From Diplonema japonicum (Eukaryota > Protista > Euglenozoa: Diplonemea): a stretch of 11,268 bases of DNA. The translations under genes were made by a program, and so were the position numbers. Below the pieces are notes generated by a model that saw nothing but the letters and a program-made list of their open reading frames with translations, made no database searches and was not told the origin of the DNA. The stretch's first letter is position 1. Each line of letters begins with the position of its first letter. Positions 1-11,268 of this stretch are shown here, piece by piece. The stretch covers positions 1-11,268 of the forward strand of contig OZ025775.1 of assembly GCA_964019335.1 (NCBI GenBank), given 5' to 3'.

Positions 1-138
1 GCCTTTTTCGGCGAAGACCCCCTTCAGGTGCAATCGGCCCCATTTTGCACCCTTTTGCTTATGCTGGGCGTGCGTAGTATGCTACCATTTGCACCCCTTT
101 GGGAGCACAATGTCCCCGTACGCGGCATCAGCCTGTGT

Positions 139-205
139 TACTACTACTATATTACTACCATTATATTATTGCTACTTGCTACTACTACTACTATTATTAT
201 TATTA
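139..205 (+). repeat. Degenerate (TAC)n/(TAT)n trinucleotide tract (copy at 6849-6915)
   Basis: tactactactatattactacca...actactactactattattattatta; produces the poly-L/T/Y runs in the ORF track. Confidence 0.85.
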
Positions 206-1075
206 GTTGGTGTTCTTCCCGATATCCTTTCTGATAAAGTACTAAACAAGTATTCACTAACATATACTTCCCTCGGATGTACCACCAAGACATGCCCTCC
301 AATACTACAGTATACAAGGGTACTTTGGCATCCCCTTAATACTCCGTGATGCCTCAGATATGGAGATGGGTATGCCTGATCACTATTCTCTACTAATATT
401 GTATCCGTGCCTCACCGTGCCCTTTTGGGAAAAGTGCATTTCATTTTCCCAAATTGGGAAATGCCCAATCCCTTGAGTCTTCGAATAAAATGAGGTACCT
501 CCCAATAAAGTGGTATTTCGGGATGCCCCCATTTCTAGGTATCCCACTGGTATTATACTACTACTGCCTGATACACTGTATCCTCATGTATTACCTCTAC
601 ATCTCTATATACACCCTCATCATGATATCATCTCATTACTATTATTATTATTAGTTGGTGTTCTTCCCGATATCCTTTCTGATAAAGTACTAAACAAGTA
701 TTCACTAACATATACTTCCCTCGGATGTACCACCAAGACATGCCCTCCAATACTACAGTATACAAGGGTACTTTGGCATCCCCTTAATACTCCGTGATGC
801 CTCAGATATGGAGATGGGTATGCCTGATCACTATTCTCTACTAATATTGTATCCGTGCCTCACCGTGCCCTTTTGGGAAAAGTGCATTTCATTTTCCCAA
901 ATTGGGAAATGCCCAATCCCTTGAGTCTTCGAATAAAATGAGGTACCTCCCAATAAAGTGGTATTTCGGGATGCCCCCATTTCTAGGTATCCCACTGGTA
1001 TTATACTACTATTACTAGATATTCCCTGTATCCTCATGTATTACCTCTACATCTCTATATACACCCTCATCATGA
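189..1075 (+). repeat. Tandem duplication, 448-bp period (copy A 189-625, copy B 637-1075)
   Basis: 189-563 is identical to 637-1011. After a short divergent patch, 576-625 is identical to 1026-1075. ORF ends 349/797 and starts 510/958 differ by 448. Confidence 0.97.
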
Positions 1076-1477
1076 CCTACCTGATGGCACCTCATTACCC
1101 AGATTCTGGGGATGAGCTGACGGTCTACAGATCCTCTGATTTCCAGAGGGGTCAATATCATAATATCATAATATTCTGTTGTCCGTACATCACCGTGCAT
1201 TCCTGGATATTACTGATTCCATTTCTCCGAATTGCAGTATTACCCAGGCTATTCCCCCGTACGCAGGACTAGATGATGCTCCCTCTACCATCCCCTTTTA
1301 TACTACTACCTTCCGGACCCCAGAGATACTCGGAATCTCCAGATTCCGGGGATCTCGGGTTCCGCCGAGGATGCAAACCCCTCCAGATCTCTCCAAATCC
1401 CCCCTTTTTGGGGTCTTGGGTACCAGAACCTGGTATTTCCTGAGATCCACAGGACCCCAAATCCCCTGTTTATACGA

Positions 1478-1489
1478 GGGTTTGGTGTA
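1478..1489 (+). promoter_or_regulatory. CSB-3/UMS-like dodecamer, possible replication-origin element (copy at 8188-8199)
   Basis: GGGTTTGGTGTA matches 11/12 positions of the kinetoplastid universal minicircle sequence GGGGTTGGTGTA. Canonically spaced CSB-1/CSB-2 are not immediately upstream. Confidence 0.3.
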
Positions 1490-1540
1490 GCAGTACCCTC
1501 ACCACTACCAAATCCCCCTTTAAACCCCTGATCCTGGGAT

Positions 1541-1707
1541 TCTACGGCCCTGTAGCTATGCAATATTGGGACACCTCTCTGGGCTCCTACGGGTGTTTTT
1601 TGCAAATTAACCCGCTACGTCCCAGAGAATATCTACGGCCCTGTAGCCCTCCGATTTCGGAAACCCTTGTGGGACACTACGTAAGAATTATGCAAATTAC
1701 CTCGCTA
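1541..1707 (+). repeat. Degenerate ~90-bp tandem repeat, 2 copies (copy at 8251-8417)
   Basis: TCTACGGCCCTGTAGC at 1541-1556 and 1632-1647; TGGGACAC in both halves; TGCAAATTA(ACC/CCT)CGCTA at 1601-1617 and 1691-1707. Confidence 0.85.
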
Positions 1708-1715
1708 TATCCCCC

Positions 1716-1733
1716 ACGCGCGCGCGCGCGCGT
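1716..1733. repeat. A(CG)8T perfect 18-bp palindrome, alternating purine-pyrimidine tract
   Basis: ACGCGCGCGCGCGCGCGT read directly from the sequence. Confidence 0.95.
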
Positions 1734-1911
1734 AAGGAAAGAGAGTGTTGGGGACTCTGATCTGGGGGTCATAAGGGTGGTTTGGTACAAGACCCTGTTA
1801 TTAGGGCTGTTGCTAAGGTGTCTAATCCCTAGGGTATAAGGTCTTACAACCCAACATAAGGGTTGTAGGGCTGATCATCCTACCCTGCTAGGCTATTATC
1901 TAGGGCTAATG

Positions 1912-1962
1912 TCTGATATCCCTTCTGATTGGTTACCTGGATATGTACTTCCCTCGGATGTC
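1912..1962 (+). repeat. 51-bp direct repeat, left boundary of cassette (copy at 8622-8672)
   Basis: TCTGATATCCCTTCTGATTGGTTACCTGGATATGTACTTCCCTCGGATGTC is identical to 3355-3405. Confidence 0.95.
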
Positions 1963-2025
1963 TCACTAAGATATGCCCTGCTCCACACTACTGTCTGTCA
2001 TAGTTCCTGTCTTATCTCCTGTTAG

Positions 2026-2080
2026 TTATTACTCCACATGTCTACATAGCATACACACTCTCTCCTTATTACTCCACATG
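2026..2080 (+). repeat. 15-bp direct repeat TTATTACTCCACATG, 40-bp period
   Basis: Copies at 2026-2040 and 2066-2080; variant TTATTACTCTCCACAT at 2251-2266. Confidence 0.85.
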
Positions 2081-2151
2081 CTATTAGTTGTACTCCTGTT
2101 AGTACTTCCCGTAGCTCTGTTCCTGGTATCATAGACTACACCACGCACAGG

Positions 2152-2457
2152 ATGTGATATGCACATGCTATCTACATGCGTACCGTGCCCCACATGGATG
2201 TGATGCTTTCCATTATTGTATTACATGGCTTCATGTATTATGCCCACTATTTATTACTCTCCACATCACAGGGTCTAAGTACCCACTCTCTGTACCAACA
2301 GCTGTGCTCCACCTGTGCCTGTTCTACGTACCCATGTGTAGCTATCCTGTTTGGCATTGTTCCATGGACTCACCACATGTACTTACTATGAGTATACTGC
2401 TTCATGGCATCTCCCATATTCCTAGGTACTGCTATTATGTGTATCATGTATCGGTAG
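2152..2457 (+). CDS. Hydrophobic frame read through TGA (Trp); possible gene module of unknown identity (copy at 8862-9167)
   Basis: MWYAHAIYMRTVPHMDVMLSIIVLHGFMYYAHYLLL...AILFGIVPWTHHMYLLWVYCFMASPIFLGTAIMCIMYR*, with two in-frame TGA (2155, 2389) and a Cox1-like WxHHMY. Frame openness is weak evidence in G-poor DNA. Confidence 0.15.
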
Positions 2458-2464
2458 TACGTAG

Positions 2465-2692
2465 CGGAATCCCTGTGGCTGAGTACCACATGTATTAACC
2501 ATTGTTATGCTCAGGATGTACTTCCTACTGTTGGTATGGATACTGTTCCTCGTACTTATTGTTCTATTGTTCTACCACATACTACGTACCTGTATGCTCA
2601 CCACTTCATTATGCATTCCACTGTATGCCAGTGCTTATACGGTTACATACATGTACTACACACTGTACCATCTCCTCACAGCTCTTACTTAG
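2465..2692 (+). CDS. Putative mitochondrial membrane-protein gene fragment, weakly Nad3-like C-terminal part, TGA=Trp (copy at 9175-9402)
   Basis: RNPCGWVPHVLTIVMLRMYFLLLVWILFLVLIVLLFYHILRTC...YTLYHLLTALT*. CG-aromatic-x-P followed by a strong TM helix recalls the Nad3 loop ECGF-x-P plus TMH2. The canonical acidic DLE residues are absent. Similarity judged by eye only. Confidence 0.25.
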
Positions 2693-3354
2693 CACACCAT
2701 ACTTTACCATTGCATATACTCTTATTACACTATCGTAGTACTCCATTATGCTATGCATGCTATCCACGTAATGCACGTAGCTACACATACATGTACGTAC
2801 TTAGTGTATGCTCACCTACTTGTCCTGATACATTGTCTTGCTGTCATACATGCCCTGCTAAGTACAAGCATCGGATGCTCCACCAAGACATGACTACTAG
2901 ATATCATTACTGTACCATCCACTACTCAGTCCCAGAGACCTATCTGTTATACTATCCGTACATTGTTGTGTAGGCTTCGCTTCTGTACATGCACGGGGAT
3001 ATATTCCCTGGACTATCTCTATGCACTACGGTACCTCTGGGCTAATAGGCTGCTGTATAGGGACGACTTCTGCGTCGTCTCTTACGGGTGCACATTACAC
3101 ATGATGCTGTAGACGATGTCACCGTCCCTCATGTCCTCGTTGATGGGTTGTCCACGTAGATATACAGTGGTTCCACTCTGGTGGGAGATAGCTACACACT
3201 GCATACTAGATACTACGAGAGGACTATCCTACAGAGCATTCCCCGGATCTACTGATATTATATTATGTACTTCCTAGATATCCTGTGCTGTACTTTATTA
3301 CTACATTAACCATGGCAGACTATACTGTTGCAATACTGATTAATACAGTGACTA

Positions 3355-3405
3355 TCTGATATCCCTTCTGATTGGTTACCTGGATATGTACTTCCCTCGG
3401 ATGTC
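3355..3405 (+). repeat. 51-bp direct repeat, right boundary of cassette (copy at 10065-10115)
   Basis: Identical to 1912-1962, offset 1443. Confidence 0.95.
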
Positions 3406-3681
3406 CCACCACAGTAGGCCTATCCCTGAGAACCATTAATTCCGGTACGTCACATTGAGGTCGCTACGAAGTCCCGTACGAGTGGCTACCCTCTCCGAAA
3501 CTCTCCTGAACTCCAGCACACTGCGCTTATGCGTGTGCGTGTCGCCCCCGCCCGTGGGTATTGGTCGTCGGGTGCTTCGTCGGGTGGGACTGCTAATCCT
3601 GTGGGCTCCTGGTTAACCGCTTTGGTGGGGTCATCGCTTCATCCCTAGGAGAGGGGACGGTCACAGCGAATGGTGTCTCGG

Positions 3682-3700
3682 CCTACCTGTAACAGGTAGG
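3682..3700. repeat. Perfect 9-bp inverted repeat CCTACCTGT-A-ACAGGTAGG (copy at 10392-10410)
   Basis: Arms are exact reverse complements around a single A. Confidence 0.9.
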
Positions 3701-4922
3701 TGGAGCCCTTTGTGGTAGGTAGGTGTGCGTTGCCTATGCTACTGCCAGTGTGCCTACTCGTATACATACCTTGGTCTATTGGGAACAGTACACTCTCATA
3801 GACGATTGTTCATCAGTTCTGATCTCTAGTGCTTGCGCTACGGATCAGGACATAACACTGCACAGACCGGTAGCTCTGGGCATCTACGTCGGATGACCTG
3901 TACGATTACTAATTGGTAGTGGCTGCGGTTACGTATATCCTACTTGAGAGGTGGTTGTAGGCGTAACCTGGTTGCTATCCGTGTGTGCCGTATCTCATCA
4001 TAGAGTGTGCCTAGCTTTGGGGTGACGCTCCACAGTTCGTGCAGTTATTGGATAGTGCCCGCTGCACCGTTCTGTGATTGCGAAGCACACTGGGCAGAGG
4101 AGTCCTTTCTCTGGCTCCCGACTGGGTCGGATATGTAACAGATACAATGCGCTATAGAACAGGCGTGAGGGTACACGAGGGGCAGTAAGATTATGGGAGG
4201 GCTACGGCCGATCCTGCCCTGGTGCCTGGTGATGATCTGAGCCCCTTAGTGGACCGGGGGTGTAGGATACCTGGCTGCACCGAACCGTAGTTCACAGGCT
4301 GCGGGCTCCCCATGATACTATCAGCGAGCTCCTTGGCGGGACCTATGGACTGTTCCATCTGTAATGACCTGATTGTGTACTTCCCTTAGATATAATGAAT
4401 GGCATTCTCTCTCGACCTCCAGCTGCGAACGTCACGGTATCACATTCCTTTGTTTGTGCTGGGCCGGCTTCCTAATCCGCTACAGATAGTGTTAACGCAG
4501 AGTCCCAAGGGGCTGTATTTACCTCCGACTCCTAGGCAGAGTATGGTAAGGGTCGTGTCAGTTGGGAGCGAGTATGGGTGGGCTCCCTGCAATGACCATT
4601 GAGAGTTGTTCGCACTAGGGGAGCCTTATACGGGTGGAGCTTTATCACAATATACGTACTGGTGTCTCCAGAGGGTATCCGATCTGATCACGTACCTTAA
4701 CCTCTCTAGATTGTACAGCGCGTGTATGTCCTCCTCGCCAAGGGGTGATGTTTAGCAGGCATCAGCTGTGTCGCATATAAGTGCCTAAAGCGGCTCCTCT
4801 TTCATGTACGGAACGTCCACTGTTCGTTAAGACCTTGCTTGATCTCGGCACTACTCCCCCACACCTCATACACATGCTATGAGTATACCCTGATGTATCC
4901 CTAAGAGTTAGTGGTGGTACCA

Positions 4923-5189
4923 CGTTCATGTGCTAAGCTTCGTGATCGAGAAGATGGCTCTGCATGGGTGGAGTAATGTCCCCATTGGCTTGTGTGGAGA
5001 TCAGGCAGTACTAATGCCCCCTCACACTTGCTGGTGGAGCATCCTATGCATCCGTCCTTTTGCGCTGCCAAGTCCGGGCGTAACTTTCCCAGCTAACCGG
5101 TGAGACCACAGCATGTGCACTACTGACTACAACTCCCCTGGGTTATGAGAGGTCCATTTGCGTACATGTGCTAAGCTACGGGATCGAGA
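4923..5189 (+). repeat. 29-bp imperfect direct repeat pair (4923-4951 and 5161-5189)
   Basis: CGTTCATGTGCTAAGCTTCGTGATCGAGA vs CGTACATGTGCTAAGCTACGGGATCGAGA, 3 mismatches, 238 bp apart. Confidence 0.85.
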
Positions 5190-6898
5190 GGAGCGAGATA
5201 CGTTCACATGTCCACGTTACCGTATGACTATCATGTCCTAGTATCTAGCTATTGCTGGCTGCATGGTAGTGTACGGTCTCTTACTTCCTGATGATACAGA
5301 GTAGTGTAGTGCATCGGCCGTGCATGATTACTCATTTATACGAGATCAAGTGGACGGTAATGGGTTAGACGGTAACTGTATCGTGGTAGCTGCACGGAAT
5401 CGGGGGGATGAATAGGCCCCCCGTGGTGCGGTATGGGTTTTACCCGGGGTGGTGTGTGTCAGCGCACGGCATGTAGATGTTAGTACCATCTATGATGCAG
5501 CCATCGCTGGGCCCCTTTTCAGTGGTGACTGGCAGAGCACCCAGGACTCCTTCCCACTTCGGTGGTTCTTTCCCTATCACTCCCTTGCTAGCAGGGAGAT
5601 GGGCCTCTTTGATTGTATTCCTTTGGGTGATAGAGACCAAGGCGGGAACAGTGCTAACCTGTCGCCCTGGCCCGAGAGATAACTGAGTCCGTAACCAGCC
5701 GTGACCAGCCGGAAAGTGCAGAACCTTGCCGACCAGACATGTCAGGGGTTGTGCCAGGGTCCGTATGGTAATTCCCTGTTAACGAGCCTCCTCTTCCTCA
5801 CCATGATCTCACTTAATCAGATACGGTAGCTGTGGGAGGCCCCTACGCGTGTACTCCTGGGGCCTCTGTTCTATGCTGTACTTTGTACAGGCCTGCCACT
5901 CCCAAAGTAAGTCAGTTGGCTCGACGCATCCAGGCTGCTGAACCTGGACCTGCGGCACACTGCACCTAGAACACACATCCTATCCGGACGCGTTCTTCCG
6001 GACTACCCACTGTATGTTATGAGTAGTACAGGACGAGGCGCCTTTAATTGCGACCCCCTGAAGCTAACGGCATACATTTGGACAAAGGATGTTGCTACTT
6101 GGTACACGAGCAGGACTCTTAGCCTCTCGCTCCCCGGACACAGGAGTAAGCGACGGGACCCCACTCACTGTACCTCATGGTAGTAAGTTATCACAAAGAC
6201 CCTGTCGCGCAGGCGTCATCCTCGGGGGAGCCGTGGGTGTTGGGACTCACGGTGAATCACCCTGTATCGAGGTGGGCTTCGGCCGTCTGACACGTTTCAC
6301 GTCCTTTACGAGACGGGTTCGGTACTCCCTGTTGCCATAGCGTGTACTTCCCTCTCAACAAGGGATTGCATGCCGTACGCAGGTCTGGGTACCACCGCAC
6401 CGCTATTCCCCTAATCACTGCAACGTAACCCCTGACGTGCGGGGTATAGTGAGGGAGTCGAGTCTCCGTGCGTCCATGCCTAACCAGCGGAAGGCGCAAC
6501 CACCGGAGCTCTGAATAGCACTACACGGGCTGAAGGTTCTCTTATTAATGTGGTTAGAGGATCTTCAGGGGGTGATGGTCTACCACCCACCTTAGCGGGT
6601 TACAGTGATTGCTTCCCTTGTGCAGTGACAGTTCCTGCCGGGACCACGTATTCGCCCCTTGACCTCAGGGTAGGGCAATTTGTGGGTGGGGACCCGTTTC
6701 GCCTAAAAACGCCTTTTTCGGCGAAGACCCCCTTCAGGTGCAATCGGCCCCATTTTGCACCCTTTTGCTTATGCTGGGCGTGCGTAGTATGCTACCATTT
6801 GCACCCCTTTGGGAGCACAATGTCCCCGTACGCGGCATCAGCCTGTGTTACTACTACTATATTACTACCATTATATTATTGCTACTTGCTACTACTAC

Positions 6899-7785
6899 TA
6901 CTATTATTATTATTAGTTGGTGTTCTTCCCGATATCCTTTCTGATAAAGTACTAAACAAGTATTCACTAACATATACTTCCCTCGGATGTACCACCAAGA
7001 CATGCCCTCCAATACTACAGTATACAAGGGTACTTTGGCATCCCCTTAATACTCCGTGATGCCTCAGATATGGAGATGGGTATGCCTGATCACTATTCTC
7101 TACTAATATTGTATCCGTGCCTCACCGTGCCCTTTTGGGAAAAGTGCATTTCATTTTCCCAAATTGGGAAATGCCCAATCCCTTGAGTCTTCGAATAAAA
7201 TGAGGTACCTCCCAATAAAGTGGTATTTCGGGATGCCCCCATTTCTAGGTATCCCACTGGTATTATACTACTACTGCCTGATACACTGTATCCTCATGTA
7301 TTACCTCTACATCTCTATATACACCCTCATCATGATATCATCTCATTACTATTATTATTATTAGTTGGTGTTCTTCCCGATATCCTTTCTGATAAAGTAC
7401 TAAACAAGTATTCACTAACATATACTTCCCTCGGATGTACCACCAAGACATGCCCTCCAATACTACAGTATACAAGGGTACTTTGGCATCCCCTTAATAC
7501 TCCGTGATGCCTCAGATATGGAGATGGGTATGCCTGATCACTATTCTCTACTAATATTGTATCCGTGCCTCACCGTGCCCTTTTGGGAAAAGTGCATTTC
7601 ATTTTCCCAAATTGGGAAATGCCCAATCCCTTGAGTCTTCGAATAAAATGAGGTACCTCCCAATAAAGTGGTATTTCGGGATGCCCCCATTTCTAGGTAT
7701 CCCACTGGTATTATACTACTATTACTAGATATTCCCTGTATCCTCATGTATTACCTCTACATCTCTATATACACCCTCATCATGA
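6899..7785 (+). repeat. 448-bp tandem duplication in the second unit
   Basis: Same as 189-1075 at +6710. Confidence 0.97.
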
Positions 7786-8425
7786 CCTACCTGATGGCAC
7801 CTCATTACCCAGATTCTGGGGATGAGCTGACGGTCTACAGATCCTCTGATTTCCAGAGGGGTCAATATCATAATATCATAATATTCTGTTGTCCGTACAT
7901 CACCGTGCATTCCTGGATATTACTGATTCCATTTCTCCGAATTGCAGTATTACCCAGGCTATTCCCCCGTACGCAGGACTAGATGATGCTCCCTCTACCA
8001 TCCCCTTTTATACTACTACCTTCCGGACCCCAGAGATACTCGGAATCTCCAGATTCCGGGGATCTCGGGTTCCGCCGAGGATGCAAACCCCTCCAGATCT
8101 CTCCAAATCCCCCCTTTTTGGGGTCTTGGGTACCAGAACCTGGTATTTCCTGAGATCCACAGGACCCCAAATCCCCTGTTTATACGAGGGTTTGGTGTAG
8201 CAGTACCCTCACCACTACCAAATCCCCCTTTAAACCCCTGATCCTGGGATTCTACGGCCCTGTAGCTATGCAATATTGGGACACCTCTCTGGGCTCCTAC
8301 GGGTGTTTTTTGCAAATTAACCCGCTACGTCCCAGAGAATATCTACGGCCCTGTAGCCCTCCGATTTCGGAAACCCTTGTGGGACACTACGTAAGAATTA
8401 TGCAAATTACCTCGCTATATCCCCC

Positions 8426-8443
8426 ACGCGCGCGCGCGCGCGT
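8426..8443. repeat. A(CG)8T palindrome, second unit
   Basis: Same as 1716-1733 at +6710. Confidence 0.95.
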
Positions 8444-11268
8444 AAGGAAAGAGAGTGTTGGGGACTCTGATCTGGGGGTCATAAGGGTGGTTTGGTACAA
8501 GACCCTGTTATTAGGGCTGTTGCTAAGGTGTCTAATCCCTAGGGTATAAGGTCTTACAACCCAACATAAGGGTTGTAGGGCTGATCATCCTACCCTGCTA
8601 GGCTATTATCTAGGGCTAATGTCTGATATCCCTTCTGATTGGTTACCTGGATATGTACTTCCCTCGGATGTCTCACTAAGATATGCCCTGCTCCACACTA
8701 CTGTCTGTCATAGTTCCTGTCTTATCTCCTGTTAGTTATTACTCCACATGTCTACATAGCATACACACTCTCTCCTTATTACTCCACATGCTATTAGTTG
8801 TACTCCTGTTAGTACTTCCCGTAGCTCTGTTCCTGGTATCATAGACTACACCACGCACAGGATGTGATATGCACATGCTATCTACATGCGTACCGTGCCC
8901 CACATGGATGTGATGCTTTCCATTATTGTATTACATGGCTTCATGTATTATGCCCACTATTTATTACTCTCCACATCACAGGGTCTAAGTACCCACTCTC
9001 TGTACCAACAGCTGTGCTCCACCTGTGCCTGTTCTACGTACCCATGTGTAGCTATCCTGTTTGGCATTGTTCCATGGACTCACCACATGTACTTACTATG
9101 AGTATACTGCTTCATGGCATCTCCCATATTCCTAGGTACTGCTATTATGTGTATCATGTATCGGTAGTACGTAGCGGAATCCCTGTGGCTGAGTACCACA
9201 TGTATTAACCATTGTTATGCTCAGGATGTACTTCCTACTGTTGGTATGGATACTGTTCCTCGTACTTATTGTTCTATTGTTCTACCACATACTACGTACC
9301 TGTATGCTCACCACTTCATTATGCATTCCACTGTATGCCAGTGCTTATACGGTTACATACATGTACTACACACTGTACCATCTCCTCACAGCTCTTACTT
9401 AGCACACCATACTTTACCATTGCATATACTCTTATTACACTATCGTAGTACTCCATTATGCTATGCATGCTATCCACGTAATGCACGTAGCTACACATAC
9501 ATGTACGTACTTAGTGTATGCTCACCTACTTGTCCTGATACATTGTCTTGCTGTCATACATGCCCTGCTAAGTACAAGCATCGGATGCTCCACCAAGACA
9601 TGACTACTAGATATCATTACTGTACCATCCACTACTCAGTCCCAGAGACCTATCTGTTATACTATCCGTACATTGTTGTGTAGGCTTCGCTTCTGTACAT
9701 GCACGGGGATATATTCCCTGGACTATCTCTATGCACTACGGTACCTCTGGGCTAATAGGCTGCTGTATAGGGACGACTTCTGCGTCGTCTCTTACGGGTG
9801 CACATTACACATGATGCTGTAGACGATGTCACCGTCCCTCATGTCCTCGTTGATGGGTTGTCCACGTAGATATACAGTGGTTCCACTCTGGTGGGAGATA
9901 GCTACACACTGCATACTAGATACTACGAGAGGACTATCCTACAGAGCATTCCCCGGATCTACTGATATTATATTATGTACTTCCTAGATATCCTGTGCTG
10001 TACTTTATTACTACATTAACCATGGCAGACTATACTGTTGCAATACTGATTAATACAGTGACTATCTGATATCCCTTCTGATTGGTTACCTGGATATGTA
10101 CTTCCCTCGGATGTCCCACCACAGTAGGCCTATCCCTGAGAACCATTAATTCCGGTACGTCACATTGAGGTCGCTACGAAGTCCCGTACGAGTGGCTACC
10201 CTCTCCGAAACTCTCCTGAACTCCAGCACACTGCGCTTATGCGTGTGCGTGTCGCCCCCGCCCGTGGGTATTGGTCGTCGGGTGCTTCGTCGGGTGGGAC
10301 TGCTAATCCTGTGGGCTCCTGGTTAACCGCTTTGGTGGGGTCATCGCTTCATCCCTAGGAGAGGGGACGGTCACAGCGAATGGTGTCTCGGCCTACCTGT
10401 AACAGGTAGGTGGAGCCCTTTGTGGTAGGTAGGTGTGCGTTGCCTATGCTACTGCCAGTGTGCCTACTCGTATACATACCTTGGTCTATTGGGAACAGTA
10501 CACTCTCATAGACGATTGTTCATCAGTTCTGATCTCTAGTGCTTGCGCTACGGATCAGGACATAACACTGCACAGACCGGTAGCTCTGGGCATCTACGTC
10601 GGATGACCTGTACGATTACTAATTGGTAGTGGCTGCGGTTACGTATATCCTACTTGAGAGGTGGTTGTAGGCGTAACCTGGTTGCTATCCGTGTGTGCCG
10701 TATCTCATCATAGAGTGTGCCTAGCTTTGGGGTGACGCTCCACAGTTCGTGCAGTTATTGGATAGTGCCCGCTGCACCGTTCTGTGATTGCGAAGCACAC
10801 TGGGCAGAGGAGTCCTTTCTCTGGCTCCCGACTGGGTCGGATATGTAACAGATACAATGCGCTATAGAACAGGCGTGAGGGTACACGAGGGGCAGTAAGA
10901 TTATGGGAGGGCTACGGCCGATCCTGCCCTGGTGCCTGGTGATGATCTGAGCCCCTTAGTGGACCGGGGGTGTAGGATACCTGGCTGCACCGAACCGTAG
11001 TTCACAGGCTGCGGGCTCCCCATGATACTATCAGCGAGCTCCTTGGCGGGACCTATGGACTGTTCCATCTGTAATGACCTGATTGTGTACTTCCCTTAGA
11101 TATAATGAATGGCATTCTCTCTCGACCTCCAGCTGCGAACGTCACGGTATCACATTCCTTTGTTTGTGCTGGGCCGGCTTCCTAATCCGCTACAGATAGT
11201 GTTAACGCAGAGTCCCAAGGGGCTGTATTTACCTCCGACTCCTAGGCAGAGTATGGTAAGGGTCGTGT

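Follow-up and report, generated by a model that had tools for sequence, protein, structure and literature searches.

Diplonemid mitochondrial genomes are multipartite, and each chromosome is a small circular DNA molecule of about 4-12 kb. Among the closest described counterparts of the locus reported here is the mitochondrial rRNA of Diplonema papillatum, whose LSU rRNA contains a non-encoded tract of ~26 U followed by a 352-nt module 2 and whose rns is 366 nt long (Valach et al. 2014, PMC3936708). In D. papillatum, the break in rnl falls between domains IV and V; H69 and H71 lie in the 3' third of a module 1 of about 534 nt, module 2 begins exactly after the U tract, Rfam-type models fail on both modules, and the two are located on two B-class chromosomes sharing about 95% constant region.

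Chromosome classes (A-E) were defined by Kaur et al. 2020 through cassette flanks with >90% identity over >100 bp. Singleton "unclassified" chromosomes already form a category of the published scheme, D. japonicum is reported to have three unclassified multi-module chromosomes and cassettes whose median length is about 1 kb, and the modules of an array are said to come from different genes, with one exception (PMC5658414, PMC7049700). The U chromosomes of D. ambulator, D. sp. 2 and D. japonicum carry multi-module arrays and no class cassette-flanking motifs; as published, they are partial short-read contigs whose size was not determined.

The window analysed here, with a length of 11,268 nt, is an entire contig (C131) of the assembly of the marine protist D. 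japonicum. We consider it very probable that it represents a complete singleton chromosome of 6,710 bp belonging to the D. japonicum multipartite mtDNA, with a cassette carrying rnl module 1 and module 2 and an interval that may hold rns. The contig resembles D. papillatum in the point at which rnl is split, the size of both modules, the position of H69 and H71, the putative junction at which module 2 begins and the failure of Rfam models; it differs in that one singleton holds both modules, which share a strand, follow the order of the transcript and are separated by 365 nt. Like the U chromosomes it has an array of modules and lacks the class flanking motifs, but it is complete and unites two neighbouring modules of one gene. 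This kind of system is already known and has been published for the same strain (Kaur et al. 2020, PMC7049700); a known system was correctly called, which is not a discovery. The contig shows a singleton chromosome in full, has the predicted rnl halves linked in cis, and confirms that assembly from long reads yields entire diplonemid mitochondrial chromosomes, which the 2020 short-read study could not size.

Chromosome unit and predicted rRNA cassette

The contig comprises 1.68 exact copies of the unit (Table 1). The 6,710-bp periodicity described in the initial annotation is exact, with 0 mismatches in the 4,558-base overlap at offset 6710, and fits a circle or a head-to-tail array read 1.68 times, two topologies that are not separable from contigs. 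No tRNA was found in the unit with ARAGORN, and no Rfam family was detected in the whole unit or in narrow stretches of it. The contig has no Pfam-recognisable ORF; profile searches of it with PF00115, PF00361, PF00033 and PF00346 gave no match, and the cassette ORFs produced noise only against Pfam and PDB sequences.

Table 1 Coordinates of features in the window
Feature	Position	Strand	Remarks
Complete chromosome unit	1-6710	+	6711-11268 is an exact repeat of 1-4558
~448-bp repeat, two tandem copies	189-1075	+	
Dispersed ~70-80-nt motif	about 219-300 and 667-748		Inside the ~448-bp copies
Universal element 2 (~126 nt)	404-528; second copy 852-976	+	
Universal element 1 (206 nt)	1533-1738	+	
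Left 66-nt direct repeat bounding cassette	1912-1977	+	
Predicted rnl module 1, 5' part of mitochondrial LSU rRNA	about 1996-2529	+	23S alignment, RNA-like contig
365-nt interval between rnl modules	2530-2894	+	Candidate rns, by inference only
Predicted rnl module 2 (352 nt), LSU rRNA domains V-VI	2895-3246	+	23S alignment, RNA-like contig
Peptidyl-transferase ring segment	3033-3056		In rnl module 2
Short H89-like hairpin	3063-3082		In rnl module 2
CGATGTC	3114-3120		In rnl module 2
Sarcin-ricin loop TACGAGAGGAC	3214-3224		Exact 11-mer vs E. coli 23S
Right 66-nt direct repeat bounding cassette	3355-3420	+	
Chromosome-specific GC-richer (50-58%) sequence	3421-6710	.	No recognised gene

The unit had been called gene-less, a description that does not hold, as the segment between its repeats carries predicted rRNA gene modules. 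The repeats themselves were correctly recognised: 66-nt direct repeats, with the initial 51 nt identical between the left and right copies, flank 1978-3354, and this segment is distinct in composition, being T/C-rich with 41-47% GC vs the GC-richer sequence beyond the right repeat. Pseudo-modules were also looked for in the backbone, where no match exceeded 27 nt. The depth comparison proposed between backbone and cassette yielded about equal values (21.5 vs 27.4 in run X1, with run X4 similar). One loose end that follows 1977 and is missing from the assembly may point to a relative with the same left flank that was not assembled.

The 5' end of rnl module 1 was placed by an RNA-like contig and its 3' end was inferred from the 23S alignment together with the 534-nt size in D. 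papillatum. This RNA-like contig, 514 nt long and from a related species (its RNA nature was guessed by the tool), spans 1996-2509 and terminates at 2509 without a T tract. Positions 2441-2524 align with E. coli 23S 1910-1997 (H69-H71) at z 5.4 with 0/500 shuffles, and form the top-scoring of 270 windows of the unit against 23S. None of the reading frames stays open through the module 1 stretch, and the listed species differences in it lack a 3-base periodicity. A likeness to cox1 noted by eye (WTHHMY at ~2362-2382, TVGMD at ~2531-2545) was rejected because PF00115 gave no match on the contig; it was also ruled out by the lack of an open frame and by the alignment of the region to 23S domain IV.

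In rnl module 2, positions 3028-3224 are colinear with E. coli 23S 2434-2666 (z 5.6, 0/500 shuffles) and are the best of 270 windows, both strands considered, against 23S. An RNA-like contig of the related species corresponds exactly to 2895-3246, with 7 differences over 352 nt, and in it 24 T directly abut 2895; here too the RNA nature is the tool's guess. The T24 at 2895 and the length of 352 nt together match D. papillatum module 2 and its ~26-U junction. The folding energy of module 2 was ordinary (z 0.45), and of the 25 loci retrieved from metagenomes with the 17-mer that surrounds the sarcin-ricin loop, 0 were related to the cassette.

The peptidyl-transferase ring, the sarcin-ricin loop and H69-H71 occur in colinear order on one strand, the pattern by which rnl was to be recognised, and on this alignment evidence the cassette is predicted to encode both halves of the LSU rRNA gene on the + strand. 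Rfam covariance models scored both rnl modules below threshold; since Rfam misses even module 2, its silence is uninformative. Given the negative Rfam result and the ordinary folding energy, the rRNA calls rest on the E. coli alignment and one related-species run, and because the RNA-like run is from another species and its RNA nature was guessed, the module ends are approximate. Plain local alignment of whole blocks against full-length 16S and 23S was not discriminating. By analogy with D. papillatum, transcription of the circle would start in the constant region, the module transcripts would be trimmed, and module 1 would gain a ~26-U tract and be ligated to module 2, giving an LSU rRNA of ~0.9 kb.

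Interval between the rnl modules

The interval between the rnl modules possibly holds rns, a gene recognised by 530-loop and 3'-minor-domain motifs and, in diplonemids, by an editing cluster and an oligo-U tail. Conservation is seen in the 3' portion of the interval (2668-2883), which also occurs in the related-species RNA-like run, and a copy of the dispersed motif at 2871-2892 overlaps the 3' end of this block. Editing-tolerant alignment of 2510-2890 with 16S gave no significant similarity (z below 2).

It comes somewhat short of an even chance that 2668-2883 is not rns and represents either one module of a protein gene with low conservation (nad or y) or a conserved non-coding spacer. The non-significant 16S similarity, a hydrophobic frame of 66 codons open at 2693-2890, and the rule in D. 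japonicum that multi-module cassettes mix genes are in favour of this reading. The frame, however, begins 25 nt inside the conserved block and has no Pfam match and 0 HMMER matches among 1.84 billion representative proteins, the 365-nt distance between the rnl modules fits the rns length of D. papillatum, and 2780-2884 is weakly colinear with the 3' end of 16S (z 1.8).

We regard it as rather unlikely that all D. japonicum mitochondrial rRNA coding sequence is on one singleton chromosome and one strand, arranged as in the transcript with rns placed between rnl modules 1 and 2. If this were true, one precursor would feed both ribosomal subunits, and the LSU halves would still be excised on either side of an "intron-like" SSU rRNA, given U tails and ligated back together. 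The arrangement would then be an exception to the published rule of different genes per shared cassette and a natural test of whether diplonemid "trans"-splicing cares about cis linkage; it would be novel only if absent from the supplementary tables of Kaur et al. 2020.

Sister circles and alternative origins

The genome note for D. japonicum YPF1604 reports 62.3 Mb and "mitochondrial genome: multipartite", and the present assembly agrees with it in size and layout. The assembly contains 11 sister contigs (C122-C132), each an array in which units of 5.2-8.5 kb follow one another head to tail; those that are hetero-multimers were covered in part. Several of the contigs bear pieces of cox1, cob, nad and nad7, most with in-frame TGA, and within the genome these pieces are confined to C122-C132. 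Class I consists of C124-C130 and C132, and class II of C122 and C123. The proposal that the window is a diplonemid mitochondrial chromosome is borne out by the match to YPF1604, the gene pieces on the sisters and the cassette with its gene modules. As in the class I and II circles, the contig has both universal elements, which all sister contigs possess, a head-to-tail assembly, and gene pieces in short unique stretches; members of one class have 70-93% of their length in common, whereas only 3% of the present unit is shared at >=90% identity with any sister contig.

A backbone common to sister circles that differ in their cassettes, as had been expected, was not found for this contig: only the 206-nt and ~126-nt elements are common, and a search of the assembly with the 3.3-kb backbone (3400-6710) recovered no other copy. 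The flanks 1739-1977 and 3355-6710 likewise have no other copy, and the only stretch shared at >90%, 1533-1738, lies about 240 nt from the cassette. The contig is a singleton "unclassified" (U-type) chromosome. The initial annotation had named missing backbone-sharing sisters and uniform coverage as grounds for abandoning its proposal; on these grounds a correct core idea would have been wrongly discarded.

A truly gene-less "empty" chromosome, on which the rRNA likeness is due to chance or a dead pseudo-copy, is very improbable. It would agree with the lack of Rfam, tRNA and Pfam matches on the circle, and empty chromosomes are reported from other diplonemids (PMC7049700). Against it, Kaur et al. 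2020 give none for D. japonicum, and the two colinear, same-strand 23S alignments (domains IV and V-VI) each outscored 500/500 shuffles as well as every other window of the unit. The related-species RNA-like run, moreover, holds only three blocks of the contig, at 92-98% identity and with the T24 junction at 2895, and these conserved blocks have no other copy in the assembly.

Slightly less probable still is an origin as a nuclear tandem satellite, as mitochondrial DNA copied into the nucleus or as an endosymbiont plasmid. Such an origin could accommodate the inseparability of circle and array, the two bacterial endosymbionts of the host, and the occurrence of the sequence in runs labelled with several other organisms. 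It is opposed by the stand-alone nature of the contig, which has no unique flanking DNA, by invariant elements common only to contigs bearing mitochondrial gene pieces, by the very high depth in run X4, and by the cassette being the sole rnl copy of the assembly.

The kinetoplastid or bodonid guide-RNA minicircle offered as an alternative by the initial annotation has a negligible probability and is excluded by the diplonemid host and the rRNA-module cargo: of the universal minicircle 12-mer (conserved sequence block 3, GGGGTTGGTGTA) this contig has a single copy with one mismatch, at 1478-1489, a likeness that chance would produce ~0.1 times per window and that no sister circle shows. The singleton chromosome resembles kDNA minicircles as a small multicopy mitochondrial circle with a short conserved and a variable region, but has no guide-RNA genes and no conserved CSB-3, and its cargo would be rRNA gene pieces joined post-transcriptionally.

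Universal elements

The region that had been described as control-like does contain a 448-bp tandem duplication, a 206-nt element and a (CG)8 run. Every ~448-bp copy includes one dispersed ~70-80-nt motif and one universal element 2, the latter with 77-79% identity to a segment found in every sister chromosome class and with a conserved core that includes GAGTCTTCGAATAAAATGAGGTACCT. Universal element 2 is present once in class I and in three tandem copies in C122 and C123.

Universal element 1 contains two 36-nt repeats; its identity is 93% with the circles of class I and 84-85% with those of class II. Its depth is ~80x that of the rest of the contig in two independent runs (1167-1720 vs 21.5 in X1), and we infer that it is a candidate origin or promoter region. 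Both universal elements are the best candidates for replication and transcription signals. The 78-nt core of universal element 1 (1661-1738), which is the same in all three classes bar one position and terminates in (CG)8-TAAGGA, offers a concrete candidate for such a replication or transcription signal.

A circle-like unit of a multipartite mitochondrial genome

The assembly comprises 62.5 Mb in 132 contigs, and the window spans all of contig C131. Positions 6711-11268 match 1-4558 with 0 mismatches, so that C131 consists of 1.68 copies of a circle-like 6,710-bp unit, whose features are listed in the table. This unit, the 448-bp duplication, the (CG)8 region and the repeat-bounded segment (the cassette) uphold the initial annotation, which had described an exact 6,710-bp periodicity, a structured control-like region and one repeat-bounded segment of distinct composition. 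Searches of the unit for tRNAs, Rfam families and ORFs with Pfam matches were all negative.

Features of the 6,710-bp unit of C131
Feature	Position	Strand	Details
Tandem duplication	189-1075		448-bp repeat
Element 2	404-528 and 852-976		77-79% identical to sister-circle copies
Element 1 (universal)	1533-1738		two 36-nt repeats and (CG)8 run; identity 93% to class I, 84-85% to class II
Cassette	1978-3354		T/C-rich, lower GC; between 66-nt direct repeats, first 51 nt identical
rnl module 1	about 1996-2529	+	5' end observed, 3' end inferred
rnl module 2	2895-3246	+	first T ambiguous with U tract
X20 piece	1996-2509		514 nt, 41 differences
X20 piece (third block)	2668-2883		216 nt, 18 differences
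X20 piece	2895-3246		352 nt, 7 differences
GC-richer stretch			3.3 kb

Querying the assembly with 1-3400 returned contigs C122-C132, all of them built from units of 5.2-8.5 kb repeated head to tail. A six-frame HMM search of the whole genome found pieces of four genes, most with in-frame TGA, confined to C123-C130 and C132: cox1 (PF00115), nad2/4/5-type proteins (PF00361), cob (PF00033) and, as a weak match, nad7 (PF00346). The published note on the D. japonicum YPF1604 genome (peDipJapo1.1, PacBio HiFi; 62.30 Mb, 118 chromosome-scale scaffolds) gives "mitochondrial genome: multipartite" and flags mitochondrial contigs (PMC13598402). For the same strain, Kaur et al. 2020 reported 30 chromosomes, grouped into 5 classes apart from some left unclassified; most were multi-module, with a median cassette of about 1 kb and chromosome sizes unknown (PMC7049700). 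With gene pieces restricted to the sister arrays and a match to the published genome of the strain, C122-C132 are the fragmented-gene, multi-circle mitochondrial genome known from diplonemids, as had been proposed from the sequence alone.

A number of the sister contigs combine different units (hetero-multimers); these may be true concatemers or may have arisen where the assembler ran on through the constant region that the units share. In C130, four units of ~6.02-6.04 kb with a PF00361 (nad) piece are followed by two 5,757-bp units with two cob pieces, and the universal element lies at, e.g., 2617, 8659, 14684, 20725, 26729 and 32486; C132 is largely a reverse-orientation duplicate of its cob units. 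Nuclear rDNA lies on C119 (tandem unit 6,825 bp, 18S 2,070 nt), and partial matches to the eukaryotic SSU model (36-590 nt) occur on the chromosome-scale contigs C37, C78, C80, C18, C34 and C22.

Shared elements and chromosome-specific sequence

When contig portions were compared at >=90% identity, 70-93% of length was common within class I (C124-C130 and C132) and 71-79% within class II (C122 and C123), whereas C131 had just 3% in common with any sister contig. No second copy of 3400-6710 exists anywhere in the genome assembly; depth in public run X1 was about equal for cassette (27.4) and backbone (3421-6710; 21.5), with the same picture in run X4, and loose ends at 970, 1544, 1634 and 1738 run into sister circles. 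There is thus no family of circles with this backbone, and the earlier claim that sister circles share it and differ in the cassette does not hold for C131. C131 is a singleton, of the type that Valach et al. 2017 and Kaur et al. 2020 call 'unclassified'. One X1 contig continues from the left 66-nt repeat past 1977/1978 into 85 nt missing from the whole assembly, a loose end that hints at an unassembled mitochondrial chromosome with the same left flank.

Within element 1, the core at 1661-1738 has one variable position, is otherwise invariant in the three classes and ends (CG)8-TAAGGA; Logan contigs from two independent runs show it at ~80x the depth of C131-specific sequence. Because it is the sole sequence conserved in all classes, this core is the leading candidate origin or promoter. 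Class I has a single copy of element 2; C122 and C123 each have three in tandem. A dispersed motif of about 70-80 nt, ending TACTTCCCTCGGATGT..CCACCAAGACATG, was found in the assembly only on C131, where it occurs once per 448-bp repeat and makes up both 66-nt cassette borders; a further copy of its 3' half (2871-2892) sits where the third block gives way to module 2. It may be a processing-site mark, or may have mediated array insertion or excision.

The kinetoplastid gRNA minicircle, raised initially as an alternative, was rejected: C131 has one near-match to the universal minicircle 12-mer (GGGTTTGGTGTA, 1478-1489, one mismatch), placed 45 nt upstream of element 1, but none of the sister circles has it, so that it is probably due to chance.

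Ribosomal RNA modules in the cassette

Just three pieces of the 6-kb stretch compared, all within the cassette, are contained in X20, a public run labelled as a different organism and taken as a related species, whose RNA nature is a tool's guess. Its contig for 2895-3246 carries 24 T attached directly upstream of 2895. The mitochondrial LSU rRNA gene (rnl) of D. papillatum is in two pieces, module 1 of 534 nt and module 2 of 352 nt, and the latter begins exactly past a tract of some 26 U that are not encoded (PMC3936708). Aligned to the E. coli rRNA genes, 3028-3224 (+) is colinear with 23S 2434-2666 (z 5.6, 0/500 shuffles as high), taking in the peptidyl-transferase ring, then CGAUGUC and finally the sarcin-ricin loop, and including the exact 11-mer TACGAGAGGAC. 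The segment 2441-2524 (+) aligned to 23S 1910-1997, the H69-H71 core of domain IV (z 5.4, 0/500 shuffles), placing this domain in the 3' third of module 1 exactly as in the D. papillatum model. When 270 windows from the two strands of the unit were scanned, each of these places scored highest for its own 23S segment. Neither an open reading frame across 1996-2509 (TGA read as Trp) nor 3-base periodicity of the listed X20 species differences in that piece was found. These findings led us to assign rnl modules 1 and 2; the cassette thus holds gene modules, as had been predicted, and the circle is not gene-less, contrary to the earlier statement. A metagenome scan with a 17-mer around the sarcin-ricin loop returned unrelated loci exclusively. 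A 27-nt motif, CACCACATGTACTTACTATGAGTATAC, at 2371-2397 in module 1 recurs 113 nt downstream at 2484-2510 (70% identity) and in the unique backbone at 4862-4888 (81%), with no larger pseudo-module around the backbone copy.

The interval between the two modules measures 365 nt, and the D. papillatum SSU rRNA gene (rns) is one 366-nt module. The 3' 216 nt of the interval, the third block, are conserved and represented in X20, and we consider this region a candidate rns, with the chances about evenly divided. Otherwise it may be a conserved spacer or belong, as a module, to a gene of low conservation: comparison with 16S gave no significant similarity, whether or not C-to-U and A-to-I editing was allowed for, and Rfam is not decisive here, since it also missed rnl module 2. 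The sole open hydrophobic frame (2693-2890) begins inside the block and has no Pfam match; a search of 1.84 billion representative proteins gave no homologue either.

Expression model and occurrence in other runs

The analysis shows the circle-like unit, its universal elements, which two rnl modules are present, in what order and on which strand, and a T-tract junction at the start of module 2 in the related species. By analogy with D. papillatum experiments, the whole circle would be transcribed from the constant region and the module transcripts trimmed; module 1 would gain about 26 U and be ligated to module 2, itself transiently polyadenylated.

This kind of chromosome is already known and published for this strain. 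C131 adds, modestly, a full-length singleton chromosome, a delimited universal core and both rnl halves in cis in transcript order, possibly with rns between them. Modules in one cassette were reported to come from different genes, with one exception (Valach et al. 2017, PMC5658414), so the cis arrangement may be notable, or may already stand in a published supplementary table.

Between 30 and 90% of the words of 1-6710 were also found in runs under at least seven other organism names from eight studies, a coral metagenome among them; some of these runs probably represent endosymbiont projects or same-study sister species, with C131 present by carry-over.
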